Below, one piece after another: positions 1-25,783 of a stretch of 64,000 nucleotides of DNA. Under the pieces are notes generated by a model, which made no database searches, was not told where the DNA came from, and saw only the letters and a program-made list of their open reading frames with translations. How positions within the stretch are numbered: position 1 is the stretch's first letter; each line of letters starts with the position of its first letter. The stretch lies in NCBI GenBank assembly GCA_964019335.1, contig OZ025724.1:124001-188000 (forward strand), read 5' to 3'. Origin of the DNA: Diplonema japonicum (Eukaryota; Protista; Euglenozoa: Diplonemea). The position numbers and the translations under genes were made by a program.

Positions 1-1314
1 TGGGAGCGGCCCGCAGTGCCCGCCCTCATAGAGCTTTAACATTTGCTGTTTTGCGCTTCGGATTTTGAGCTTCAACTTCTCAAGTCGTTGTTGTCGATTT
101 GTTGCCGCCCCAACTGTCGACTCCGTAGACCTCGCACTCAGCTCCGACTTCGTAGGCTCCCGAACCTTGCCTCTCCCGGTGTATACGCTGCGCACCGGAC
201 CCACGTATCCATGTAGTAGGTACTGCTCCGCGAGGTCTGCTATCTCCGAGAACGCTTCGGTGGGCTTCTGCGCCGTAATGAACTCACGGTATTTCGACTT
301 CTGCATCAGTGTCTCCGCTACTCCGGTGGGTGCCCTCTTGGTCTTCGGTATCTCCTGCGGGACGGTGTATCTTAGGACTTCTTGTCGGAAGGCTGGGATG
401 TTGAGTGTTACCGACAGGCATCGGTGGTCCGACCCGGAGATAGCCTCGTTTACTCCACAGTGTTCGAGCCCCTGGGCCGCGATGTTGTTCAACAGTACCC
501 TATCCACCCGCGTACTGCAGTTGGTTCTGACAAGCGTGCTCTCTACCTGCGCTCCATCCCTCCGAGCACAGAACGCAGCGGCGTCTACCCAATCCGTCTG
601 TAGAGCCCTCCTTAGCGTGGCGGAACGGGTTTCGTCCGTGTTGAAGTCACCCATCACGGCCACCGGCACGTCTCCCAGCTCGAACTTGAGTCGGTGTAGT
701 AGGTAATGGAGAAGCTCCTCACGGTACTTCGCCTTCGTCGGGTCTTGTCCTGAGTGGCAGTATACATTCACCAAATGAAGCCATCGCTTGTTCCCATCAA
801 GTGAGATTTTCACGTGTGACCATCTGTCCTTGTGCGGCCCAGCCGTTTCACAGACCACCGCTGTCCGTGGTTTTTTCACAAAGATCCCTAGTCCGCCCCG
901 CTTCGCTATCGTCAGAGACGTGACACCCTTGGTCTCCCTCCCCGGCTGAGGTTTGCTCCAGAATCTGGTGTATTGTTTGCCCCAAACATCATCTCTCAGC
1001 ACGTGTTCAATCTCCATCTGAGTCTGTGCTGTGAGGGCAGTTTCTTGGATGCAGAATGCGTCCGGGAGGACAGTAGAGTACTCACCCAGCCGGTTGTTTA
1101 GTGCTGAGCCGTTGTGTGTGAAAATGGTGAAACTCTCTGGTCCTGGCTCTGGTCCGGGGTGGGGTTCGACACCTTGTTCGATGAGGCGTTCAAATTTCTT
1201 GTCAGATAGGCGTATCGGATGTATTTGGATGGACGGGAAAGGGGGGGAGGGAATGGGTTTGAAGGGTGGGTTTGGGGGGAGTTCCCCTGTAGTCACTGCT
1301 CGCTTTGCTCGCAT
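1..1314 (-). CDS. LINE ORF2, N-terminal part (2A-like peptide + AP endonuclease), partial
   Basis: Manual translation from the ATG at 1314, open to the window edge (absent from the ORF track because no stop is reached). APE motifs: FTHN, CIQET, GGLGIFV, NVY, VMGDFN, TRVDRVL, SDH. Confidence 0.9.
   Translation of the reverse strand, partial: MRAKRAVTTGELPPNPPFKPIPSPPFPSIQIHPIRLSDKKFERLIEQGVEPHPGPEPGPESFTIFTHNGSALNNRLGEYSTVLPDAFCIQETALTAQTQMEIEHVLRDDVWGKQYTRFWSKPQPGRETKGVTSLTIAKRGGLGIFVKKPRTAVVCETAGPHKDRWSHVKISLDGNKRWLHLVNVYCHSGQDPTKAKYREELLHYLLHRLKFELGDVPVAVMGDFNTDETRSATLRRALQTDWVDAAAFCARRDGAQVESTLVRTNCSTRVDRVLLNNIAAQGLEHCGVNEAISGSDHRCLSVTLNIPAFRQEVLRYTVPQEIPKTKRAPTGVAETLMQKSKYREFITAQKPTEAFSEIADLAEQYLLHGYVGPVRSVYTGRGKVREPTKSELSARSTESTVGAATNRQQRLEKLKLKIRSAKQQMLKLYEGGHCGPLP
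1150..1200 (-). other. 2A-like (stop-carry-on) peptide KKFERLIEQGVEPHPG|P
   Basis: GVEPHPGP lies immediately upstream of the APE domain. It is a variant of the D(V/I)ExNPGP consensus, in the position where 2A-like motifs occur in L1Tc/Ingi-type elements. Confidence 0.65.
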
Positions 1315-3512
1315 CCGCGGCACTTTACCCTATTGCAGTCTAATATTATGCAGGACTGTGCTGGGTTGTTTTTCGTGATATTCCCGTTGCAGTAGTGGCA
1401 CACCCCCTTCCAGTATTGGTATGTCCCGTTGTAGACGTGGCATATGCCTTTGCCCAGGCAGTCGTTGATGTCGGTGCCCTCATCTAGGTCGATGTCGGTG
1501 TCATCGTCAGTCGGGGGGGGACCCAAGTCATCCTCCGTCTCCATGTCGTCGTTTTCTCCTTCCTCGGTTAGCGAACGGGGCTGGTCCTTGTCCAGTCTCG
1601 AGATCGTCGCCTCCGTGAGGGCTTTTATCTGCTCGGTGAGAGCTGCCATCTGGGTGCGCATCTGCTGGACCTCCCCTCGCAGCTGCGCGTTCTCTCTCCG
1701 CAGTTCGATCACTTCCGCAGATGGCTCGTCGTCTCTGCTCGGTTCCCCCGCCAGCTTGCGGATCGCATTTTCGATTGCTGTGAGGCGGTCTTCCACTCCC
1801 GGGGTACCTGATTTTCCCGTCGCTGTGGGCGCCTTCCCGGACTTCAGAGGGGCAGTCTTTTTCGGGGGAGCGGTCTTCTTCCCTGTAGCAGGTGGTTTGT
1901 GGCCGGGCTGGGTGGACCCCGTCACTGCGCCTAGGTAGGATTTGCCTGTGGCTGTGGTCCCTGTCTTCGGTCTTCCCCAGGACTGTGCAGTCGGTGTCTT
2001 TTTAGTGGGCGGGCCCCCCATGTCGGGTGCTATCCTGCAGTGGAGGATCAGCCCTGTCGGGGATGTGATTCTCAGCGTCGTGGTAGGGGGTTTGCCTCCC
2101 CGAATGTACCAGCACCTCCCGTCGTTGCTCCAGCCGCCGTGTAGAGGAACGGCATCCCATTTCATGGTCCGGAGTATCAGTTCCACGTGCTCCACACCGC
2201 ACTGTCCGTACAGGCCCGTCAGACGCCACCTCGGCTCCCCATGTTGTCCGCGCTGTCGTTCATCCTCGCCCAACACCTTGTCAAGGAGCGCGGTCTTCTC
2301 CCCCTCCGACGTCCTCACACCGAGGCGGCAGTCCGACTCACGAATCGCTAACCCCTGCTTTTCCGCTTCTGCCAATTCGAGCGCTTCCTTTAAAGTGGTT
2401 TCCTTCGGGAGCCAAGCGACGGGGGATCTCGGCACATCCTTCGGTCTAACGAAGATCCCTCCCCTTCCGGACGTGTTCACGAATCTGTCGAGGCTGCTTT
2501 TCGGGACCGTCACCAGTACGTCTACCCTCGGGGTCGGACCCTCCACGATCTTGTCGATCCTGTGGATTGTCTTGCAGTTCAAGTCCCGGAGGAGCTTTCG
2601 GGGTTGGGAGGTTATATTCTCCCACGTCTGGGCCGAGGCGTGCGCTTTCGAGAAGATAATCGCGACCCGCGCGAATCTTGCCCCCAGGTTGATGTCCACT
2701 GTGTCACTTGATGTGCGCATGGCAATCCTCCCGCTCACTGCCAGCAGGAACATCTTCCTGTTCGTGAACTCTCCTTCCGCCTTGAGTACAACGTCGTACT
2801 CATCCCGTCCTGTGCCGCGGCGCTTCAGGATGAGCGCTTTGTTCCCGTCCCATGCCATCTTCTCGGCCTCCTTCACGTTCTCCTCGGTTGCGATGGCAAC
2901 GCCGTCCTTTCCCGCCACCAGCTCATCCCACGTCACGAAGGGCTGGTCAAACTGCCCTTGCTCCAGGGACCAGCGTTTCGCTGCCTGCGGTTGTTTCTGC
3001 GGCGGTTTGCTGCTCGGCCCTCTCCAGGCTCTCGCCTCGCCGTCTGAGGTCGGGATGCCTACCCGTGGCAGCTTGAACTCCTGCACTACTTTCTTCAGAA
3101 CGTTCACGTTGAACGGTTCTGACGCGTTGAGGTAAGCCCGGCCGTCGAAGGCGACGTGGATGGGCAGCTTTTTGGACTCTCCCGAGATAGGGGAGACTGT
3201 GAGGGCGCCGTTTTCGACTGCCATTAAGCGGATGTCGATCTTCCATGCGCGGGCGGTGGCCTGGATGGTGACCAGGTCGGCGGCGGTGCCTTCCTTCGCG
3301 TGCTGGGTGCAGTAGGCATCGTAGTCCCCGGTGACGTTCACCCGGTATTCTTCGCTCCCTCGCAACTCCTGTACCATGCGGCGTCTAATGTCGCTCCCCT
3401 TCTTCCCCGTCTTCTCCCCGACCACTCCGTAGAAGGAGTTCCCGTTCCCGTTCCCGTACGCCCTCCTGTGCGCCGTCATCCCGAAGCCCTTCATTGCTTT
3501 AAAGATGTCCAT
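1293..3512 (-). CDS. LINE ORF1: N-terminal OTU-like domain (catalytic residues lost), coiled coil, acidic tract, C-terminal Cys/His cluster
   Basis: 772-codon ORF (open from 3611, first ATG 3512). OTU-like segments: GNGNSFY, IRRRMV, YDAYC..HAKEGT, IHVAFDGRAY. Coiled coil ELRRENAQLRGEVQQMRTQM. C-terminal CHYC..C....C....CRGC. Confidence 0.8.
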   Translation of the reverse strand: MDIFKAMKGFGMTAHRRAYGNGNGNSFYGVVGEKTGKKGSDIRRRMVQELRGSEEYRVNVTGDYDAYCTQHAKEGTAADLVTIQATARAWKIDIRLMAVENGALTVSPISGESKKLPIHVAFDGRAYLNASEPFNVNVLKKVVQEFKLPRVGIPTSDGEARAWRGPSSKPPQKQPQAAKRWSLEQGQFDQPFVTWDELVAGKDGVAIATEENVKEAEKMAWDGNKALILKRRGTGRDEYDVVLKAEGEFTNRKMFLLAVSGRIAMRTSSDTVDINLGARFARVAIIFSKAHASAQTWENITSQPRKLLRDLNCKTIHRIDKIVEGPTPRVDVLVTVPKSSLDRFVNTSGRGGIFVRPKDVPRSPVAWLPKETTLKEALELAEAEKQGLAIRESDCRLGVRTSEGEKTALLDKVLGEDERQRGQHGEPRWRLTGLYGQCGVEHVELILRTMKWDAVPLHGGWSNDGRCWYIRGGKPPTTTLRITSPTGLILHCRIAPDMGGPPTKKTPTAQSWGRPKTGTTATGKSYLGAVTGSTQPGHKPPATGKKTAPPKKTAPLKSGKAPTATGKSGTPGVEDRLTAIENAIRKLAGEPSRDDEPSAEVIELRRENAQLRGEVQQMRTQMAALTEQIKALTEATISRLDKDQPRSLTEEGENDDMETEDDLGPPPTDDDTDIDLDEGTDINDCLGKGICHVYNGTYQYWKGVCHYCNGNITKNNPAQSCIILDCNRVKCRGCEQSEQ

Positions 3513-3624
3513 GGCTGATGCGTCTGGATCGCTGATGTTGATGTTTACGATGCAGATACTGATGTGATGCTTGCGTTCTCCTCTCCTTTCTTTTCCTTCA
3601 CTCCTTTGCACTAATCCCGAGACT

Positions 3625-3795
3625 TTTACACTTCTTAAACCTATGCACTTCCGTTAAACCTTACACTTCCGTTGAACTCCGTTAAACCTTACACTTCCGT
3701 TGAACTCCGTTAACTTTTATACTTCCTTCAAACCTTTACACTTCTTTTAAACGTCTACACTTCCGTTGAACCTTGATGTCGCGTTCTTTACTTCC
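3625..3795 (-). repeat. Degenerate tandem repeats in the LINE 5' UTR (core GGAAGTGTAAGGTTTAAC on minus)
   Basis: About 8 copies of (ac)acttc on plus, including a near-exact 28-bp duplication acacttccgttgaactccgttaaacctt. Confidence 0.8.
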
Positions 3796-3824
3796 AATAT
3801 TTGTATTTTCTTTTCAAACCGTTA

Positions 3825-3862
3825 CAATAAAGTACAGAAACTGTAGCTTTAGAATCGTTGGT
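3825..3862 (-). ncRNA. Spliced-leader (SL/mini-exon) exon copy, 38 nt, without SL intron
   Basis: Minus strand reads ACCAACGATTCTAAAGCTACAGTTTCTGTACTTTATTG. The CAGTTTCTGTACTTTATTG core is the conserved euglenozoan SL 3' half and the ACCAACGATT start is diplonemid-type (recalled, not searched). It is followed by TAACGG, not the GT donor of an SL RNA gene. Confidence 0.9.
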
Positions 3863-3919
3863 AAACAATTGGTTGGTGGAACAAAAATAAATATGGAGCC
3901 CGGGCCATTTACAATTTCC

Positions 3920-4070
3920 GGATGCCAAAAACTAAAAAAAACCATTCTAAAAAGCATGTTTTTGCACGCGCGTTTTAGAAATGAAACAAACGGCGCGCGC
4001 ATTGTGACCTATATGGTGAACACACCTAGACCGCAATTCTGCACACAAAGTGGTCGGACTACTTTTGTAC
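3920..4070 (-). repeat. Fragment of the MITE-like element also at 39955-40622 (inverted)
   Basis: Reverse complement matches 39970-40115 (aaaaccattctaaaaagcatgtttttgcac...gtcggactactttt). Confidence 0.8.
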
Positions 4071-4478
4071 TTAGAAATCTCCGAGGAGCTTCCGTTGCAA
4101 AAGAGGGTCATTTGTTGACATTCTTTTCCGGGCGCTACCGGTGATGACCGACAAGGTCAACAGCGAACAACACATCTGATGTTCTTCTTATATTTTCATG
4201 TTATCCCCACCACCTGAAAAGAAAGAATAACTCGAAAGGGGGGGGGGGGGGTACAGGGAAGAGAAGCGCTCCGGTAACGTCATCAAGAACGCAGTTAGAA
4301 AGAAAGGTATTTTATTAAGAGAAGAAAGAATTGAAAAAAAAACTAAGAGAAACAAAAAAGAAAAAAAGAGAGACATTTAAGGGTACCTGCGGTGTGTGGC
4401 AGGACGCCCTTTTTTTTTTTGGAAGCCAAAAAAGAAAAACTAGGAAGGAAAAAGAAAACTCGATAAAGCCTCAGGAGA

Positions 4479-6416
4479 TCAGCAAACGATGCAACACTCT
4501 TTACTTTTACAGGTTGCTTGCTTCACAGGAGGACCCCAGGACCTTGTTGGTATTCTTGGTCGCTCTTCCTGTTGTGCCGGTTGCTCCTCTTGTGCCGTCT
4601 GCTCCACTTGCTCCTCCTGTTGTGCTAGCTGCTCCTCTTGTTGTGCTGGCTCCTCCTCCTGTTGTGCCGGTTGCTCCTCTTGTTGTGCTGGTTGCTCTTC
4701 CTGTTGTGCTGGCTCCTCCTCCTGTTGTGCCGGTTGCTCCTCCTGTTGTGCCGGTTGCTCCTCCTGTTGTGCTAGCTGCTCCTCTTGTTGTGTTGGTGGC
4801 GCCTCCTGTTGTGCTGGTTGCTCCTCCTGTTCCTGTTGATGTCCCCATAGTCTGAGGAATTCCACAACATCTTTCCTGTGTTCCACTGGGGTCCCTGAAA
4901 GAAAACAGCTGCCGACAGTGGTGACATTGCGAAGGGGGTTGAGATCTACAGTTCTCAAAGAGCTGCAGTTCTTGAGAAAGCTGTCACCAAGATGCTGAAC
5001 GTTCCGCAAGGGGCTCAGATCCACAGAAGTCAATGATTCACAGCGATAGAGAAAACTATCACCTATATTTGTGATGTTCTGGAGAGGACCCAGATCCACA
5101 GAAGTCAATGATTCACAGCGATAGAGAAAATTATCACCTATATTTGTGATGTTCTGGAGGGGACTCAGATCAACAGTTTTCAAAGAGCTGCAGTTGTAGA
5201 GAAAACCATCGCCAACTGACTGAACGTTCTGCAAAGGACCCAGATCCACAGAAGTCAATGATTCACAGCCATTGAGAAAATTGTGTTCGAACCGTGCGAT
5301 GTTCTGGAGGGGACTCAGATCAACAGTCGTTAGAGCTTTGCAGTTGCAGAGAAAATAGCCCACACGGGATGCAGAAGTAAAGGTGTTGCGCAGGGGGCTC
5401 AGATCGATAGATCTTAACGAAACACAATAAAGCATGAAACCCAAGTGGTTCATACTGGTCACATTCTGCAAGGGACTCAAATCCACAGAAGTCAATGATT
5501 TACAGCGACTGAGAAATAATGCGCCGACGGTGGTGACATTGCCAAAGGGGCTCAGATCAACAGTTTTCAAAGAGCTGCAACCATAGAGAAACCAGCCCCC
5601 AATGGACTGAACATTCTGCAAAGGACTCAAATCCACAGAAGTCAATGATTCACAGCCACTGAGAAAATCACGTCCGACGGTGGTGACATTGCCAAAGGGG
5701 CTCAGATCAACTGTCTTCAAAGAGCTGCAATCTCGGAGAAACTCGCACCCAATGGACTCAACATTCTGCAAAGGACTCAAATCCACAGAAGTCAACGATG
5801 TGCAGTTCTCTAGAAAAAAGGAGCCGACGGTGGTGACACTGCCAAAGGGGCTCAGATCAACATTCGTAAGAGACTTGCAATTCTTGAGAAAACAGTCCCC
5901 AACGGACTGAAGACCCTGCAAGGTCGACAGGTCCAAGGTGACGAGTGAGGAGCCAGACAAAAAGGAGTCCCCAATAGAGGTCGCACCGTCGCTCAGGGTC
6001 CACACCTTGAGGTGACGAAGCTTTGAGGGAAGCTTGCTTGTGAGTCCATCATCAAGACAGTCCAGACCAGTGACATCCACCACAAGAAGAAGCTCAGGAT
6101 TCTCCTCAAGATGTCTTTCAACATCCTCTTTCAGACGCGAGAGGTCCACATGACTGACATCAATTGTTTTATAAATACTGAACAAGAGAAGCTCGCTCCC
6201 CTGCCCCATCCCCAGCTGCTGTATCTCCTGTTCCCCACCGCCAGATGTCTCATTATCCAAGACCACACCTTCGAATTGTAAGTGGAATCTCCCCACCTCC
6301 ACTGCAGAAGCCTCAGCCGCCTTCCTGTACAAGTCCTTCACCCTGTCAAGCCCAGACAGCTCCACCTCGTGCACCACATCCTCGTCGACAGTCCTGATCA
6401 ACACTGCGAGGCTCAT
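4479..6416 (-). CDS. Ubiquitin-like + BspA-type LRR protein with QQEEQPA repeats and C-terminal CC-aaX (copy 1, intact)
   Basis: Ubl-like N-terminus (LIRTVD..VKDLYRK..FHLQFEGVVLDN..LGMGQGSELLL). About 15 25-aa repeats SLTSVDLSPLQNVxSIGxxFLxxC. A 7-aa Q/E repeat follows and the protein ends ECCIVC. Confidence 0.9.
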   Translation of the reverse strand: MSLAVLIRTVDEDVVHEVELSGLDRVKDLYRKAAEASAVEVGRFHLQFEGVVLDNETSGGGEQEIQQLGMGQGSELLLFSIYKTIDVSHVDLSRLKEDVERHLEENPELLLVVDVTGLDCLDDGLTSKLPSKLRHLKVWTLSDGATSIGDSFLSGSSLVTLDLSTLQGLQSVGDCFLKNCKSLTNVDLSPFGSVTTVGSFFLENCTSLTSVDLSPLQNVESIGCEFLRDCSSLKTVDLSPFGNVTTVGRDFLSGCESLTSVDLSPLQNVQSIGGWFLYGCSSLKTVDLSPFGNVTTVGALFLSRCKSLTSVDLSPLQNVTSMNHLGFMLYCVSLRSIDLSPLRNTFTSASRVGYFLCNCKALTTVDLSPLQNIARFEHNFLNGCESLTSVDLGPLQNVQSVGDGFLYNCSSLKTVDLSPLQNITNIGDNFLYRCESLTSVDLGPLQNITNIGDSFLYRCESLTSVDLSPLRNVQHLGDSFLKNCSSLRTVDLNPLRNVTTVGSCFLSGTPVEHRKDVVEFLRLWGHQQEQEEQPAQQEAPPTQQEEQLAQQEEQPAQQEEQPAQQEEEPAQQEEQPAQQEEQPAQQEEEPAQQEEQLAQQEEQVEQTAQEEQPAQQEERPRIPTRSWGPPVKQATCKSKECCIVC

Positions 6417-9025: not shown

Positions 9026-9414
9026 TTGGCGCTCCATTTGTTTGTGCGCACGAGCGGTCCACTTATGAACACGCCCCCCCCCCCCCCCCCCCCCCCCCTA
9101 GGGCTATGCTGGCATGGAAACGCGTTTCCATGCATTTTTTGAAAAAAAGGGAAACGGAAACGGAAACGTTTCCCTATTTTGGGGCCGTTTCCTTGGGGCA
9201 GAAACGTTTCCTTAATTTTTGGGGGTTTTAGAGGCTTATTTTTTTGGGGGCAAATCACTCGGAAGAAATATACGAGACAAAGTGACATAAGTTAGGAGGG
9301 TGCGATCTTCCGGGGTGTTGAGAGCGGTCTCAGTCTTTCGCGCGCTCGAGTCGCTTACCTGGGGTGCCGCCGGGGTGATGACCGGCTCAAACTGGCGAAA
9401 CTCAGCCTCAGGGT

Positions 9415-10077
9415 CTAGACACGTGTGTTGTGTTTCCTGCCTGGGGTTGTCCTGGCCCACACATCGTCTGGGATGCAGAGGATGTTGTGTTCGGAGTATG
9501 TCGCGCAGATGTGTTTGAAGCTCTGGAGCCTTAGCCGTACGTCGGTGTCTTTGACCATGTACCTTCCCTTCTTCCTGAGAGCGATGAACCAGTGGCCGCT
9601 GAGACTTCGTTTCAAGGGACCAACGATCAAGCAGGGGCTTTCTTTCATGCCCGCACGGAAGACCTCCAAGTTTGCACCAACGACCATGAGGCAAGCACGT
9701 GACAAGGTCGAGCGGGAAAAGTTGCCAAGAGGATCGGGCGCTTCATCAGTGCTGGAAGGGGAGATGAGTCGTGAGAAGCCGTGGTACATCTCCTGGATCT
9801 CCTGCATTGTAGAGAAGGGGATGCGGTCCACACCAGCATAGTCCGCCAACCAGTTTATGACGGCCCAGCCGCATTCCAGGCCCAGGCGACCTTCCCCGCT
9901 GTTGGTGTGCAGGTTGATGGGGGGCGAAAAAACCTGGTCCGTGACACCAGATGGTGAGACCACGGAGGCTGCTCGGGGTTGTGACGGTTCGACAAGACCT
10001 GAAGAGCTGTCCGAGGAACTGTCCGAGGGCTCGTCTGAGGGGCCCCCCGAGAAGGCGACGAGGAGACGACTGAGGAG
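9415..10077 (-). CDS. Josephin-like papain-fold cysteine protease domain, probable C-terminal part of the PLE ORF
   Basis: Frame open 10077->9415. ECGWAVINWL (Cys 9871-9873), LGNFSRSTL, GHWFIALRKKGRYMVKDT (His 9592-9594, Asp 9547-9549). Confidence 0.65.
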   Translation of the reverse strand, partial: LLSRLLVAFSGGPSDEPSDSSSDSSSGLVEPSQPRAASVVSPSGVTDQVFSPPINLHTNSGEGRLGLECGWAVINWLADYAGVDRIPFSTMQEIQEMYHGFSRLISPSSTDEAPDPLGNFSRSTLSRACLMVVGANLEVFRAGMKESPCLIVGPLKRSLSGHWFIALRKKGRYMVKDTDVRLRLQSFKHICATYSEHNILCIPDDVWARTTPGRKHNTRV

Positions 10078-12650
10078 TCAGCTGAGGAGTCGTCCGAGGA
10101 GTCGTCCGTGGGAAGCGCACGGGGTTTCTTGGGGCCTATGTACGTTTTTTCCGGCAACCAAGAATCTACCGGGGCTTTGGCGTCGTATCGGTGGAGGACT
10201 TGCGTGAAGAAGGCCAGCAGGTTGCTTTTCTCCATGGCGAAGCGTCGATCCACGCGTTCGATAAGGAAGGCGTTGTACGCTTTCCGCAGGCCGCCCTCGT
10301 CGTGACCGCGATCTAGGAGCAGGTAGATCACTGAAGCGATCTCCCGTTTGAGGTCCGCGATGTTGTTGGTCAGGGCGCAGGCACGGATGACCATGCCCTT
10401 GAAGATGCCTGGTCCCTGGGTGGTGGGCGCCGCGGTGTGCCCGTGGGTGAACCGCGTAGGCCGGAAGCGCCAGTTCTGCGCCTTATCGTTAATGCTAAGT
10501 CTAATATAGTTGTGCTTAGCTTGTTCGTGGCGCTCTATCCGGATGCGAATCCCGATAAAGGGGACGTCGCATGGGTCTGAAGAGGTCTTTACATAAGCCA
10601 TGCCATAAAGCTCCTCCGGGGGTGGCGCAGTGCTCCACAACAGGAAGTCGTCGATGTAGCGACACGCGTTGCAGTAGCGTTTCAAGGTCTCCCAGTCCTC
10701 TTCGGCGAGGAGCTTGTCGATGTATGCAGCCTCCACGGCGTAGCAGAACAGGTTCGCCAGGTCGGGGGAGGCGTTCCCACCCATGGGGATACCCTTTACT
10801 TGACGAACGGCGCGGCCACCCTGCACAACATAGGTGTTGTCAACAACGAGGTCCAGGAGCTTATGGATCCGTTCCGGGGTGTAGACATCGTCCTCGTCGG
10901 CATCTGTGAAGGAGCTCCCGTCCTTGCCACGGGTGAGGTTCTTGCCGGTGAAGTCGAACGCTTCTTGGACTGCTTTACGAACCCCCTCTTTCAGACGCTC
11001 TTGGTCGAGGTTGGTGTACATGTCCCGGAAGTCGTACGTGGCAGGGGACAGGCTTTTGTAAGCCGTGTACTGCTGCTTGATATCCGCAGCTACGTTCTCG
11101 GCCGAGTCGACGATCCAGTACCGCTTTAGTCGGATACCGTCGGGACCGTGGGTCTTGGACCTGCCCTCCAGATCCTTGTCCAGCAGCGCGCGTTGGACAG
11201 CCTTCAGGAGGGAAGACAGTTCTAGATGGAGGGCCGTGGTGGCAGCTGTGGGTTTCTTAGCTTTATTGCCCGTTGTATCGCCTGCTGCGACCAAGTTCTC
11301 CATAATTTCCTGCGTGCTGACCGCTGCTGGTTGGTCCACAGGGGGTGCATCAGTGGAGGAGACACCAGAGATCCACCTGACGCCCACTTTGTCTTCGTGT
11401 AGCTTCAGGGTACCGTACAGGTATGGCATGCGACGTGTGGAATCGAGGTTGAAGGTCTTGGCTTGATCAGCTATTTCGGAGAAGATCGAGTCCAAGGGCT
11501 TCGAGACCGGCTCGAAAGCTTGGCTATCAAGCTGTTGGTGCAGGATCCTGAGGTAGTGATCCTTGCAACAGACGCCAATGTCGTGGGTGCTTTTGTCTAT
11601 GGGGAGGAAAACGTAGACCTCCTGAAGTTTCCGGAGCTTTGTCTTGATGAACTCCGGGACTGAGGGGTCGAAGACCGGAGACTGAGTGTGGGGGTGGAGA
11701 AGGTTCTGTGCCTTGGCGAGGAGGACCTTCCGGAAGGAATCCTTTTTCACTGCAGGGGATCTCCGAAAGTTCTGAGTGATGAACCCGTTGATGTCCTCCT
11801 CGAGACTTTGGGAAGAGAGGAGGGCGTGTGTTGAGAGGCGGAACTTCATGCCTCTGTTCAGAACCTCCTTCACTTCGTCGTCATCGATGACCTCTGCTAG
11901 TCCGCAGGCGTGTCCCTCATGTGTGTGTGAGGTCTTGCGCTTCGAGCAAGGGCAGTTTGTTGTAGGCTCGGCCGCTTCTGGACGCGGGGTCCCGATGCTG
12001 AGCTTCGTCACATTGCACACTGTGGCCTTGAGGGTTTGACCAAGCTTGTTGCACATGTGTACTCTGCGAAGGAGGGCTGGCTTGGGGCATGCCGCAATTA
12101 CCTCCTTGTCCTCGAAGACCTTACGCCAGAGGATCATCTCCTTGGCCTTGTGGTCAAAACTCGTTTTGAACCACACGAAGCCTTCGTCTCGGCGGACCAC
12201 CTTTTTCAAGAGGGCAGGGCTGAGGCGGTTGGTGAGGCCTCGTTCGATAGCCGCGATCTTGGCGGTGAAGAAGTTCCCGACGAAGTAACGTCTCAGGAAG
12301 TTCAGGTACCTGAAGACGGTCTTGGGGGCCCAGGTAGTGAAGTCGTAGTTCAGCACATCGGGGTGTGCACACATCGCGGTGATCTTCATACACAGGGACT
12401 TGTAGTTGGACCCAGTAGCCTGGATCGACAGCTCCCCGTCGTCGTTCAGCCGTATCGAGGGAGCAGTAGATCTGGTGGGGGTGTTGTTGGGGTTCGAAGG
12501 GGACGTAGTAGTGTTGCTGCTGGGGTCCTGTTTGGCATTCGAGCGCCCCTGGTGTTGGTGTCGCTGCTGTTGCTGCTCGCGTACCGTCTTAGGTTTACGT
12601 CTCGTGTTGCGGCGGCGACGGGTCTGCGTCTTAGCAAACCTACCACGCAT
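9855..12650 (-). CDS. Penelope-type reverse transcriptase
   Basis: Motifs: CPC..H..GH linker, FLPIDKS, PYLYGTLKLH, TYDFRDMYTNL, QVKGIPMGGNASPDLANL, RYIDD, VPFIGI, and thumb region GIFKGMVIRA. Confidence 0.92.
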   Translation of the reverse strand: MRGRFAKTQTRRRRNTRRKPKTVREQQQQRHQHQGRSNAKQDPSSNTTTSPSNPNNTPTRSTAPSIRLNDDGELSIQATGSNYKSLCMKITAMCAHPDVLNYDFTTWAPKTVFRYLNFLRRYFVGNFFTAKIAAIERGLTNRLSPALLKKVVRRDEGFVWFKTSFDHKAKEMILWRKVFEDKEVIAACPKPALLRRVHMCNKLGQTLKATVCNVTKLSIGTPRPEAAEPTTNCPCSKRKTSHTHEGHACGLAEVIDDDEVKEVLNRGMKFRLSTHALLSSQSLEEDINGFITQNFRRSPAVKKDSFRKVLLAKAQNLLHPHTQSPVFDPSVPEFIKTKLRKLQEVYVFLPIDKSTHDIGVCCKDHYLRILHQQLDSQAFEPVSKPLDSIFSEIADQAKTFNLDSTRRMPYLYGTLKLHEDKVGVRWISGVSSTDAPPVDQPAAVSTQEIMENLVAAGDTTGNKAKKPTAATTALHLELSSLLKAVQRALLDKDLEGRSKTHGPDGIRLKRYWIVDSAENVAADIKQQYTAYKSLSPATYDFRDMYTNLDQERLKEGVRKAVQEAFDFTGKNLTRGKDGSSFTDADEDDVYTPERIHKLLDLVVDNTYVVQGGRAVRQVKGIPMGGNASPDLANLFCYAVEAAYIDKLLAEEDWETLKRYCNACRYIDDFLLWSTAPPPEELYGMAYVKTSSDPCDVPFIGIRIRIERHEQAKHNYIRLSINDKAQNWRFRPTRFTHGHTAAPTTQGPGIFKGMVIRACALTNNIADLKREIASVIYLLLDRGHDEGGLRKAYNAFLIERVDRRFAMEKSNLLAFFTQVLHRYDAKAPVDSWLPEKTYIGPKKPRALPTDDSSDDSSADSSVVSSSPSRGAPQTSPRTVPRTALQVLSNRHNPEQPPWSHHLVSRTRFFRPPSTCTPTAGKVAWAWNAAGPS

Positions 12651-13720
12651 GTTAAGGGAGCAAGCCAGCCTATTGATGTACTGGTTCTCCCTGGGGATCG
12701 CAACACGACGGAAGGACTTGGCGTCGTCGAAGAACTTGGGGTTGATGGGAAAGCGAATAACGGGCCCCCGTTTTCCCTGAGGGCCTTGTGAAAGCGGGTG
12801 TCGTTGCTTTCAGCGTTCTCTCTGTGCGATCTGGCGCTGCTCCAGTGGCCCTGCATACGACGACGTAAGGTGTTAAACGTCTACCCTGCGTACACAGGTT
12901 CACCGTGTTTGTCGACAGCGAGGTAGATGATACCTGCTGCGTCCTGTTCGGGGGCCTTTCCTTGGCGCATGTTCTTTACGATGCGGCTGTACTTGGCCAT
13001 GAACTTGGCGGCTGCGTCCTGGCTGAGAGACTCCCAGAGGGCCCAGTCAATGCTGCCGTTGTTTCGTTTGCAGCTGACCGGGCTAGGCTTGGAGATGTCC
13101 CGCGACTTCTTGACTTGGTCCTTTGCCATTGTGCTAAGGAAGAAGTCCTTGCGGATCTCGTACCTGTTTTGATCTTTGCCCCAGCGGTTATCGTAGGCAG
13201 GTTGGTATCCGTGACGATAGGCGGGCTGGGGGCCAGACCGGTGGTTCGGCCGGTGGGCCGGTTGAGGAGTAGTAGGCGTTTTCCGTAAGGTCTTGACGGG
13301 ACGCGTCGGTGCTACACCTTCGGTGAAACAGGCACGGACTCCATGGTGGTGTAGGAGTGCCTGCGTGAAGAGTGCATAGGGAATATGTGTGTCCCTGGTG
13401 GCGATCTCCAGGTGGACTTTTAGCACGTTGCCGTTTTGTACGACATCACGTACGAAGAGGGCCTTTCGGACACCCGCACCATAGGCGTCACAGATGGTGC
13501 GGATGACTTCCTCTCTGGAGGGCGACCTGTTGATTGCACGGTAGTTGAAGGGGTGGGAGTTATATATGCGCGACTGACTATACTTCTTATAAGTGTTTGT
13601 TTTATTCGTTGTTGACGGAAAGGTATTGATCTTTAGGGGTGCATTTCCTGCGGCACGCCGCACCTGTGATGCGCGCGTGTCATAACGAGTTGGAAAGCGG
13701 CCATAGGCGGGTCTCTTCAT
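12651..13720 (-). pseudogene. PLE N-terminal region and GIY-YIG endonuclease (interrupted)
   Basis: GIIYLAVDKHGEPVYAG*TFNTLRRRMQGH reads in one frame (TAG where CAG/Q is expected). After a frameshift, RENQYINRLACSLN continues in the RT frame. There is no CxxC in the GIY-YIG motif. Confidence 0.8.
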
Positions 13721-14983
13721 CGCTATGAAAATGCTTGATGCTTTAGAAAAACGGAGGGTTTCTACAAAGGTGGATTGGTTACCTGACTCCTAGCAGCAGT
13801 TTTATTTAGGACAGCTTTTAGAATGACAGTCACAAGTTGGTCAAAGCACTAGACGGGTTAGAGGACCGGGGACAAGGAGGTCTAGACATGTCATAATGAG
13901 CTGATGGTGGGTATGAACTGCACCCGTTGCCGTAACGGGGTCCGACCGGAGTATTTCAACATGAGCCGAGTTGCCTACTGAGGGCTTTTTTTCCACCACT
14001 TTCCTGAGCGTGCAGGATGGTCCTGTGAGAAGGACGTAGCCTGCGCGGGCAGCAAAGCTAACGAAGGGTTCTCCTTGTCTAGGTAAGAACGGGGGGGAAA
14101 AGGAATAGTTGGGTGCATAGAATGGATATAGGGCACTATATATATGTGCAAATATACGTTCAGTCATATAGCGCGGCTCACCTCATCAAAAAAACGTGCA
14201 TGCCTTGCCTGTATGTTCACCCGTGCAGTCAGGACTATCACTGCACGGTCGAGAGCTCCCCAGGGCCAGTTTACGAAACCTATCATCGCCCAACTAACGC
14301 CGTGTCTCGCATGGACCCCCTCTTTGACGTACAAGGGGCTGAGCGGATTTCTCAGGATGTAGGATGTAGAGGTGGGGAGTCTCTAGTTGTGCGGTCAAAA
14401 GGCATTTTATCAAAAACGGGCTTTTTTCGGAAGAATGCCCTCGAAAACTTCGGCTTTCAACGACGAACGGGAGGAGATCAGTTTCGTATTTGGGTCTACA
14501 TAAATGCGACCCTGCAGAGTGACCTACGGTGAAGTAAGTCCTCATTGTTGGTCGCTGGGGTTGGTACAGCAAAGCTGTGAGAAGTCTTAAAAACTAATCT
14601 TAAGAGTTAAAAACCTGCAGAGCCTCTGGTTGCGTCTAAACGGCGCCCACAAGGTAGTGCAGTTAGAGGCAACTGAAATGGCTTTAAGTTAGGATGAAGA
14701 AGCGAAGAAATAGATAAAAAGGGGTGGGAAAGAATAAATACTGCATACGAAAACAGAGAGTCGAGTAAAAAAGGGAAAAGGTGACTGACATCCTCAAGAG
14801 GAGCCTCCCACGTACCAGGAATTAAGCAGAGGTTGCTTCCATGGCCCGTATCAGTCTATCGCCGGAAAGAATAATGAAAATAACGGAACGAAGTGAAGTA
14901 GGAAAAGAGAAAAGACGGCCTGGTCGCCAGGAAGTGCTGGTTCAGACGCGTCGGCGGACCCCACCCATAGGTTAGACACTTCC

Positions 14984-23989: not shown

Positions 23990-25783
23990 TCAAGAAGCGG
24001 TGCAACACTGCGGTTGTTTGCGAGTGGTGCCCTTTTCTTTGTTCTCTTGAAGCCCGGGCAGTCTCTTCTTAACATCCTTCTCTTTCATCGCAGTTCCTGA
24101 AAGAAATCTTTTGCCTACCTCGGTGACGCTGCAAAGGGGGCTGACATCTAGAGACTCCAGTGATGCACAGCCACAAAGGAAGAAGTCCCAGATGATGGTG
24201 GCATTACGAAGGGGGGTAAGATCAACGGTTTTCAAAGACCTGCAGTCTTCCAGAAAAGAGTCCTGAATCCGAGTCACGTTACACAATGGGGTTAGATCTA
24301 CAGAGGTCAATGCTTCACAGCCTTTGAGGTAAGCGAAGACATCGTTATCTGTGGAAAATCTGCTTAGGGGGGAGATTTCAACAGTTTCCAAAGACTTGCA
24401 CCCGCTGAGAAAGGAACGGCCTGCCGACTGAACGTTCTGCAAGGGACTCAAATCCACAGATCGCAATGATTTGCAGTCTTCCAGAAAAGCATTCCCAACC
24501 GACGCCACATTCGTTAAAGGGCGCAGATCCACAGAAGCCAATGATTCACAGCCGCGGAGAAAATTGCTCTCAATCGATGTGCATGACCGGAAGACTTCGA
24601 GATCCACGGTTGTTAGAGACTTGCAGTTCTTGAGAAAAGAGCCCGTGCGTAACATAAGTTCGGCATTCTTTGTAAGAGGGTTCAGATCCACGCGGGACAG
24701 CGATTCACAGCCGCTGAGGAACCCTTCGAAAATTGCGGAGAGTTTACCAAGTTTACCAAAAGGGGTCAAATCCACGGTCGTCAGAGATTTGCAGTTTTGA
24801 AGGAATCCCGAATGTATTGATCGAACATCCTCTAGGTCGCTCAGATCCACAGAAGTCAACGATTCACATTTTTTTAGAAAGCTGTCGCCCACAATAACCG
24901 CATTGCGCAAAGGGGCGAGGTCGATAGTTTTCAAAGCCTTGCAGTTGTTGAGAAACGAACAAGAAATAAGCGACGGGTAGTTCTGCAAGGTGCACAGCTC
25001 CACAGAGGTCAACGACTCACAACCTTCGAGGAAATGGTGGCCGATCTCTGTCACGTTTTGAAACGAACTGAGATCCACAGTTTCTACAGATGTGCACTCA
25101 TATAGGAAATACTTTTTAATTGCCTTAATGTTCTGAAAGGGGCTCAGGTCCACAGAAGTCAATGAATGACAGTGACTGAGAAAGTAGTCGCCAACAATTG
25201 TGTTTTCTTGGAGGATACACAAGTGCACAGTAGTTAGGGATTTGTTCCCATAGAGAAACCTGTCTGCAATGGATTGAACACCCTGCAAGGCCGACAGGTC
25301 CAAGGTGACGAGTGAGGAGCCAGACAAAAAGGAGTCCCCAATAGAGGTCGCACCGTCGCTCAGGGTCCACACCTTGAGGTGACGAAGCTTTGAGGGAAGC
25401 TTGCTTGTGAGTCCATCATCAAGACAGTCCAGACCAGTGACATCCACCGAAAGAAGAAGCTCAGGATTCTCCTCAAGATGTCTTTCAACATCCTCTTTTC
25501 GCCTTGGGAGCTCCTCGTGACCGAGATGAACCGTTCCAGACTGACTGCACAAGAGAAGCTCGCTCCCCTGCCCCATCCCCAGCTGCTGTATCTCCTGTTC
25601 CCCACCGCCAGATGTCTCATTATCCAAGACCACACCTTCGAATTGTAAGTGGAATCTCCCCACCTCCACTGCAGAAGCCTCAGCCGCCTTCCTGTACAGG
25701 TCCTTCACCCTGTCAAGCCCAGACAGCTCCACCTCGTGCACCACATCCTCGTCGACATTCCTGATCAACACTGCGAGGCTCAT
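23990..25783 (-). CDS. Ubl-LRR-CCaaX family copy 4 (intact, divergent LRRs)
   Basis: Near-identical Ubl start (ATG 25783), about 16 diverged LRRs, ends QCCTAS. Confidence 0.88.
   Translation of the reverse strand: MSLAVLIRNVDEDVVHEVELSGLDRVKDLYRKAAEASAVEVGRFHLQFEGVVLDNETSGGGEQEIQQLGMGQGSELLLCSQSGTVHLGHEELPRRKEDVERHLEENPELLLSVDVTGLDCLDDGLTSKLPSKLRHLKVWTLSDGATSIGDSFLSGSSLVTLDLSALQGVQSIADRFLYGNKSLTTVHLCILQENTIVGDYFLSHCHSLTSVDLSPFQNIKAIKKYFLYECTSVETVDLSSFQNVTEIGHHFLEGCESLTSVELCTLQNYPSLISCSFLNNCKALKTIDLAPLRNAVIVGDSFLKKCESLTSVDLSDLEDVRSIHSGFLQNCKSLTTVDLTPFGKLGKLSAIFEGFLSGCESLSRVDLNPLTKNAELMLRTGSFLKNCKSLTTVDLEVFRSCTSIESNFLRGCESLASVDLRPLTNVASVGNAFLEDCKSLRSVDLSPLQNVQSAGRSFLSGCKSLETVEISPLSRFSTDNDVFAYLKGCEALTSVDLTPLCNVTRIQDSFLEDCRSLKTVDLTPLRNATIIWDFFLCGCASLESLDVSPLCSVTEVGKRFLSGTAMKEKDVKKRLPGLQENKEKGTTRKQPQCCTAS

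Follow-up and report, generated by a model that had tools for sequence, protein, structure and literature searches.

Does the short open reading frame (ORF) that follows the reverse transcriptase (RT) of a Penelope-like retroelement (PLE) in the genome of Diplonema japonicum belong to that element and, if so, what kind of protein domain does it encode? The question is raised by a 64,000-nucleotide stretch of contig OZ025724.1 (positions 124,001 to 188,000 of the forward strand; hereafter the window, in whose coordinates positions are given), where three minus-strand ORFs lie in series at 13720-12881 (279 aa), 12650-9855 (931 aa) and 9963-9415 (182 aa). The first terminates in the start of a GIY-YIG endonuclease (EN) domain (GIIYLAV...VYAG), the second carries a CxC region (NCPCS...GHACGLA), the motifs GMKFR and PIDKS and an RT (Pfam RVT_1, E 4.5e-5), and the third reads ECGWAVINWL / GNFS / GHWFIALRKKGRYMVKDTD. 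An earlier note on this DNA had read the series as a GIY-YIG-CxC-RT PLE with a C-terminal Josephin-like domain, the intact form of which would encode EN, RT and protease as a single polyprotein. We consider it quite probable that the locus represents a young PLE family of the Chlamys/Naiad type, present in the window as a dead copy, whose Josephin-fold peptidase most likely serves to deconjugate ubiquitin or a ubiquitin-like protein (UBL) in cis.

Anatomy and class of the element

The search space in the organism's own genome comprised 62.5 Mb in 132 contigs, in which the 182-aa ORF gave 46 matches. Twelve of these, beside the window's own, were 99-100% identical over the whole query and lay in frames that stay open for up to 2175 codons, and two families diverged to 75% and 42% identity were found besides family 1, with the domain always in frame with the RT. 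The 182-aa ORF is thus not a chance reading frame, and of the other copies, which the earlier note had proposed to collect, at least 12 have RT and domain contiguous. A DNA search with the element recovered approximately six near-full-length copies at 98-99% identity, together with a ladder of 5'-truncated copies (at least 16 distinct truncation points) that share a common 3' end, the short ones being flanked by target duplications of 6-18 bp; this combination indicates target-primed reverse transcription. Comparison of the copies on contigs C52 and C96 of the assembly (G000) defined the intact unit as 8315 bp between 414-bp direct repeats, and on C52 an extra 2.9-kb 5'-truncated tandem copy lies upstream of the full copy, in the arrangement known as pseudo-long terminal repeats (pseudo-LTRs).

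The C52 copy contains one uninterrupted ORF of 2059 aa, running from its ATG to 360 nt before the 3' repeat, so that the single EN-RT-protease polyprotein proposed for the intact element is borne out. Its order is GIY-YIG, Lys/Arg-rich (KR-rich) block, CxC, GxKF, DK, RT, Ser/Asp linker, a 155-aa cysteine-peptidase domain (approximately aa 1285-1440) and a tail of 619 residues; the domain is therefore internal and not C-terminal as first described. The tail is genuinely coding: the 75%-identity family keeps its frame open, and the 42%-identity family likewise continues beyond the domain. Between families 1 and 2, dN/dS was 0.16 for the RT, 0.32 for the protease-like domain, 0.56 for the low-complexity tail and 0.22 for the distal tail (aa 1781-1925), and the protease-like domain is thus under purifying selection. 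The tail had no Pfam match and its distal part no meaningful PDB sequence match.

The window copy is a dead, doubly truncated retroelement copy. It occupies 9282-14959 (-), beyond the limits of 9415-13720 noted earlier, and corresponds to unit positions 117-5794, that is 5678 bp of the 8315-bp unit as delimited on C52 and C96, at 98.5-99.2% identity to intact copies by blastn. Missing are 116 bp from the start of the 5' terminal repeat and ~2.5 kb at the 3' end, comprising the rest of the ORF tail, the 3' untranslated region and the 3' repeat. What is left of the terminal direct repeat (pseudo-LTR; positions 117-414 of the 414 bp that also end the full element) lies at 14666-14959 (-), followed by the 5' untranslated region at 13721-14665 (-) and an ATG at 13718-13720, collinear with the intact copy. 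In comparison with the uninterrupted reading frame on C52, the GIY-YIG and RT ORFs of the window copy are separated by a 10-bp deletion at 12746 together with a nonsense codon at 12881-12883. The window copy further carries in-frame 3-nt deletions at 11898 (CxC region) and 11282 (the spacer between RT1 and motif A), and frameshifting 1-nt deletions at 10059 and 9419. The RT/protease frame break had been attributed to a G6 run at 10043-10048, but this run is unaltered in comparison with other copies; the frame is lost 11-16 nt upstream of the run, through the 1-nt deletion at 10059, where other copies read CTC[A]GTC. Similarly, the TAG at 9415-9417 is a premature stop only because one T was lost at 9419; all of the ~29 other copies examined read GTTCTAG at this site and continue in frame for 619 further codons. 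The first ~44 codons of that tail survive out of frame at 9282-9414 (-), and homology with other copies ends at 9282. The undeleted state was present at every lesion in contigs of the same organism from three independent public studies. A check of raw reads at the G6 run had been suggested; the contigs bear out an additional base at 10059 and no change in the run itself, although, being collapsed to the family majority, they cannot separate true lesions from assembly errors.

The search with the RT found its closest named relatives among Diplonema papillatum proteins annotated 'Ubiquitin carboxyl-terminal hydrolase 26'. One of these, P0037 (KAJ9437456.1, 1412 aa), is collinear with the ORF from GIY-YIG to the end of the RT thumb, with 33% identity over 995 aa, and serves here to support the motif assignments. 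The GIY-YIG domain (GIIYLAV..VYAGQT..R..H..E..N), broken in the window at 12665-12934 (-), was matched by Pfam in the intact ORF at aa 263-303 (E 8.9e-4; 19.9 bits, just below the cut-off of 22.6) and scored 21.5 bits in P0037; aa 263-360 of the intact ORF, inspected by eye without a reference alignment, held neither a CCHH finger nor a CX2-5CxxC linker. A KR-rich block, read directly from the sequence as a putative nuclear localisation signal, lies between EN and CxC at 12588-12650 (-); Craig et al. (2021; PMC8557442) describe such a block as customary in Naiads in the interval from EN to RT. The CxC region (11895-11957, -), the GxKF/Y motif GMKFR (11838-11852, -) and the DK(G) motif PIDKS (11589-11603, -) follow in the published order between EN and RT, and are conserved in P0037 as CPCQ..GHALGLA, GRKYR and PVDKT. 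RT core and thumb extend over 10230-11423 (-), with RT1 YLYGTLKLHK at 11397-11423, motif A YDFRDMYT at 11013-11036, motif B GIPMGGNASPD at 10761-10793 and motif C RYIDDF at 10644-10661. The ~75 residues from YDFRDMYT to GIPMGGNASPD form a spacer that is long enough to hold an insertion in the fingers domain (IFD) and is IFD-like in this respect. Pfam and NCBIfam searches of the three window ORFs gave weak RVT_1 and group-II RT matches only, with none for the protease; the RT had no PDB sequence match, and a profile search for homologues with the EN-RT profile returned no protein. No hammerhead ribozyme matched Rfam in the window at the gathering threshold, or in 20 kb around the full copy at E values up to 1.

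CxC, GxKF/Y and DK belong to the diagnostic set described for N-terminal-EN PLEs (Craig et al., 2021; PMC8557442). Pseudo-LTRs, a tandem partial copy and frequent 5' truncation, all traits of PLEs, were present as well. Because the motif set, the pseudo-LTRs, the 5' truncation and the lack of a hammerhead match these diagnostics, we assign the element, by motifs and structure, to the N-terminal-EN (Chlamys/Naiad-type) PLEs and within them to the Chlamys type. The earlier identification of a GIY-YIG-CxC-RT PLE therefore stands, with GIY-YIG, RVT_1 and the diagnostic motifs all in order.

Several further observations concern other parts of the element and its surroundings. The N-terminal 260 aa of the intact ORF (window 12935-13720), before GIY-YIG, had no family match and comprise a stretch rich in Pro, Gln and Tyr and, possibly, a small folded region (aa ~85-150). 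The distal tail (intact ORF aa ~1790-1960; L031:3-824:-), absent from the window copy, shows ~80% identity between families, better conserved than the Josephin-like domain, and begins with a PIAS-like motif of the SUMO-interaction type (EMIDLTQDSPD) followed by a predicted helical region. The 414-bp repeat also occurs alone many times in the genome (94-97% identity; contigs C85, C52, C82, C105, C51, C60, C95 and C96 of G000), and in public contigs its depth is 20-50x that of the element interior; these lone repeats mostly look like extreme 5'-truncated insertions with their own target duplications, not recombined solo LTRs. PLE copies are concentrated on a few contigs (C85, C52, C81, C106 and C91). 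On C52, a 399-aa ORF fragment of a non-LTR-type RT (L031 7582-8781 (+), equivalent to G000:C52:210581-211780) lies antisense between the partial tandem PLE and the full-length copy, where it forms a nested insertion; the region is rich in transposons. Some 3.3 kb downstream of the full-length PLE, a 10-bp unit is perfectly repeated in tandem over ~630 bp (G000:C52 ~198275-198906; C52rc 24094-24725). Finally, a public run (X11) labelled as a different, second organism contained approximately one-third of the element's words (window 9282-14959), with pieces at 99% identity; it represents a close relative or strain, unless the sample was mixed.

The Josephin-fold domain

In the window the domain (168 aa modelled) is encoded at 9418-9921 (-), and is joined to the RT by a Ser/Asp/Pro-rich linker at 9922-10115 (-) that includes the 1-nt deletion at 10059. 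The candidate catalytic codons are Cys 9871-9873, His 9592-9594 and Asp 9547-9549 (-), and the motifs SGEGR and GNFS are encoded at 9886-9900 and 9715-9726, respectively. A profile search of 1.84 billion proteins with the domain found 20 relatives, and all of those with a named source were from diplonemids (Diplonema japonicum, D. papillatum, Lacrimia lanifica and Flectonema neradi); a second homologue search with the domain profile returned one protein only.

An AlphaFold model built from a 15-sequence alignment (A3) had a pLDDT of 91.2 and a pTM of 0.87, and placed the Cys in the opening turn of helix 1, the His at the beginning of a central strand and the Asp 15 residues further on, after the next strand. 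Against 48,161 PDB representatives, VIA-align ranked the Josephin domain of an ataxin-3-like protein highest (3o65_A; Z 12.8, 143 residues, 3.2 A), with human JOSD2 (6pgv_A) at Z 11.8, bacterial Josephin-like enzymes at Z 9.2-8.6 and C39 peptidases at Z 8.9-8.6. The top three Foldseek matches were all ataxin-3 or ataxin-3-like Josephin domains (E 1.7e-5 to 1e-4). The fold check that had been proposed for this segment, AlphaFold followed by Foldseek, thus put Josephin domains on top, and the Josephin-like part of the original description holds. In a profile search of 177,635 PDB sequences the top four matches were again ataxin-3 or ataxin-3-like, at sub-threshold E values of 0.11-0.6, and the alignments set GWFS against GFFS and gHW against the catalytic EHWF of ataxin-3. 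The Cys (C17), His (H110) and Asp (D125) of the candidate triad, all three already recognised in the earlier note, are kept in all three element families of the genome; H110, W111 and D125 (the first Asp of DTD) are nearly invariant, and the Cys is present in most full-length homologues. Cys and His have been lost together in two homologues.

Four points weigh against the overall explanation proposed here. The residue at the oxyanion position, 7 before the Cys, is E in the genome's families and E, Q, K or C in homologues, in keeping with the initial impression that an oxyanion Gln was not obvious. Pfam Josephin (PF02099) did not match the window domain or the 15 homologues (E 1-10). The PDB profile matches to ataxin-3 all lie above E 0.1. 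Lastly, C39 double-glycine peptidases come second in the fold ranking, and C39-like clusters are also suggested by ESM features, although the ESM Atlas gave only weak C39-like and phage leads. A six-frame genome scan with PF02099 also gave no match, but since control genomes were blank too it is uninformative. Pfam Peptidase_C39 did not match the domain, and C39 ranked as the best fold only with a mediocre model from three sequences (pLDDT 69.6), since superseded by the 15-sequence model. On the strength of the model, the domain has a Josephin fold and is probably a distant homologue of the Josephin enzymes and a candidate Cys-His-Asp peptidase; in the absence of a PF02099 match, it is Josephin-fold without being a demonstrable family member by sequence.

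Among the relatives, P0016 (ENA, 624 aa) has three tandem Josephin-like domains, at least one of them lacking the catalytic Cys, and may be a host-domesticated or decayed derivative.

Probable function of the peptidase and possible exchange of modules

The slot of the Josephin-fold domain is filled differently in the D. papillatum relatives. P0037 carries there a full USP/UCH domain (PF00443, aa 1137-1406, E 3.6e-18), and RT and UCH are also joined in P0023, P0026 and a D. ambulator transcript, P0035. Since the combination is found on several D. papillatum contigs as well as in that transcript, it is not a one-off chimeric gene model; RT relatives in the D. japonicum genome had no USP part attached. 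Conversely, the Josephin-like module occurs on other transposons: at the N-terminus of an APE+RT non-LTR protein from Flectonema (P0009) and at the C-terminus of a MULE transposase (P0010). A Flectonema transcript (P0014) combines a PLE RT with the Josephin-like domain, and the module is also present in P0013 (D. papillatum, 504 aa), whose 90%-identity cluster includes the 2209-aa P0042, annotated as a SLACS retrotransposable-element protein.

The intact 8.3-kb element inserts by target-primed reverse transcription and encodes one protein of ~2060 aa comprising nuclease, RT, peptidase and a tail with a conserved distal part; its anatomy, the fold and the purifying selection are established by the data above. 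The function we infer for the peptidase is most likely the deconjugation of ubiquitin or a UBL, exercised in cis with the transposition machinery. Its target might be the element's own protein or ribonucleoprotein, which it would shield from ubiquitin-dependent turnover or restriction; alternatively, it could strip ubiquitin from chromatin or repair factors at the integration site, or counter host restriction. That ubiquitin/UBL deconjugation is the activity under selection is argued by the presence of two unrelated deubiquitinase (DUB) folds in the same slot and of one module on three classes of transposon.

Three other explanations of the domain have been weighed. It is most improbable that the protease ORF derives from an unrelated insertion or from a captured host gene that happens to adjoin this particular PLE copy, as might be supposed from the window, where it lies in another frame than the RT and has its own stop. 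Both frame breaks are private 1-nt deletions of the window copy, whilst RT and domain are contiguous in at least 12 copies, the 42%-identity family aligns over both in one continuous alignment and frame, and P0014 fuses the two in Flectonema transcripts; with the domain in frame with the RT in three diverged families, the scenario of an unrelated neighbour is removed. It is also rather unlikely that the domain is a catalytically irrelevant module for ubiquitin binding or scaffolding, or a functionless passenger in decay. The Cys and/or the His is indeed missing from two to three homologues (P0011, P0013 and one repeat of P0016), and dN/dS of the domain is twice that of the RT, but at 0.32 this value still speaks against decay, as do the retention of Cys, His and Asp in three element families and most external homologues and the persistence of the domain across diplonemid genera and three transposon classes.

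A somewhat better case, although still one we regard as doubtful, can be made for a polyprotein-processing protease that cuts the 2060-aa precursor in cis, for instance at Gly-Gly, and frees the RT from the tail, possibly alongside DUB activity. Such a role would fit the rank of C39 as second-best fold (Foldseek E 1e-4, in addition to the VIA-align scores) and the C39-like ESM clusters, the torovirus and enterovirus G polyprotein proteases among the BFVD matches, the position of the domain between long disordered linkers, and the nearby GG dipeptides, which precede the domain as FSGG in family 1 and follow it as EQNGG in family 3. The positions of these dipeptides are unconserved between families, and a conserved GG cleavage site was rejected since none is shared across them. 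Moreover, Josephins score ~3-4 Z units above C39, no processing requirement is known for PLEs, and replacement by a USP in relatives agrees better with a specificity of the ubiquitin type, even though viral proteases resembling USPs process polyproteins as well. Deconjugation of ubiquitin or a UBL is accordingly the role that we prefer for the Josephin-fold domain.

More tentatively, and with the balance somewhat against it, diplonemid transposons of at least three classes (PLE, non-LTR and MULE) may have recruited DUB modules as exchangeable cassettes, the post-RT slot of PLEs holding a Josephin-fold domain here and in Flectonema and a USP in D. papillatum and D. ambulator. If so, deubiquitination would be a general need for the spread of transposons in the diplonemid lineage, for example in the face of a ubiquitin-dependent restriction system, and the Josephin/USP domain-swap series would constitute a natural test of the role of accessory DUBs in retroelements.

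Two observations concern the annotation of these relatives. P0037, P0023 and P0039 (KAJ9437456.1, KAJ9462022.1 and KAJ9472448.1; D. papillatum) and P0035 (D. ambulator) are GIY-YIG-CxC-RT-USP ORFs of PLEs, so that in D. papillatum the name 'Ubiquitin carboxyl-terminal hydrolase 26' has been given to retroelement ORFs. In P0024 ('Dynein intermediate chain 2, partial') the same RT is joined to WD40 repeats, probably in a chimeric gene model.

Comparison with known systems

Accessory cysteine proteases are recurrent on transposons (Ulp1, OTU and Josephin-like). Against this background, the exchange of a Josephin fold for a USP on one backbone argues that deubiquitination itself is the selected activity, and in the D. 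japonicum family an accessory domain of a PLE is assigned on structural grounds, with high confidence, to the Josephin fold. The family is young, with copies 98-99% identical and one uninterrupted 2059-aa ORF, and belongs to a group with culturable members. With it, N-terminal-EN PLEs, so far reported from the green lineage, slime moulds and invertebrates, gain diplonemids (Discoba) as hosts. The searched literature yielded no description of a PLE from a diplonemid or of a USP domain on a PLE, and the D. papillatum genome paper lists LINE-1, SLACS, R2/jockey, TATE, MULE and Helitron elements and no PLE.

The earlier note had stated that no PLE with a Josephin-type domain was known. This claim fails, since Craig, Yushenova, Rodriguez and Arkhipova (2021; PMC8557442) describe a Josephin-like motif in Chlamys-1_cBra, a Chlamys-type PLE of Chara braunii, and also cite Josephin-like proteases in Dualen non-LTR elements. 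The diplonemid element resembles Chlamys-1_cBra in its N-terminal GIY-YIG without CCHH, its CxC and DK motifs, its long RT, the lack of a canonical hammerhead, and its pseudo-LTRs and 5' truncation. The hosts differ, being a streptophyte in one case and a diplonemid euglenozoan (Discoba) in the other; the second C/H-rich motif of the Chara element, compared by description, is not evident in the diplonemid tail, and the Josephin assignment made here comes from a high-confidence fold match, beyond weak sequence homology.

The closest known enzymes are the Josephin DUBs (ataxin-3, ATXN3L and JOSD1/2; MEROPS C86; PF02099), with which we group the bacterial Josephin-like DUBs and clippases PaJOS, PcJOS and BpJOS. 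Fold and size agree (143 and 124 residues aligned at Z 12.8 and 11.8), as do the Cys at the start of helix 1, the His in a strand-opening HW and a third residue 15 positions after the His (H110-D125). The corresponding residues of ataxin-3 are H119-N134. The G-aromatic-F-S motif of the domain also aligns to GFFS of ataxin-3. Points of difference are an identity of 14-16%, the lack of a Pfam match, Asp in place of Asn, the lack of a clear oxyanion Gln and the location inside a transposon polyprotein. Peptidase C39 (PCAT1, ComA) has a minimal papain-like fold and is the second-ranked structural match, and at the Cys the sequence of the domain is similar to the C39 consensus, (D/E)CG-x-A; C39 peptidases are, however, ~3-4 Z lower, bacterial and fused to ABC transporters, and Pfam gave no C39 match for the domain.

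The USP-bearing PLEs of D. papillatum and D. ambulator share with the D. japonicum element a collinear GIY-YIG-CxC-GxKF/Y-DK-RT and, immediately beyond the RT thumb, a cysteine domain of the DUB type, and are unlike it in that the appended domain is USP/UCH (PF00443), of another fold family. A ubiquitin/UBL-type cysteine protease is likewise fused to transposition enzymes in Dualen/RandI, in NeSL/Utopia and KI-MULEs (Ulp1) and in others (OTU), although Dualen/RandI, NeSL/Utopia and KI-MULEs use other transposition machineries and Dualen was compared by description; in diplonemids, P0009 (APE+RT) and P0010 (MULE) bear the same module as the PLE. What the present element adds to these precedents is a diplonemid host, a USP in the same post-RT slot of its relatives, and a Josephin-like module that is also carried by non-LTR and MULE proteins.

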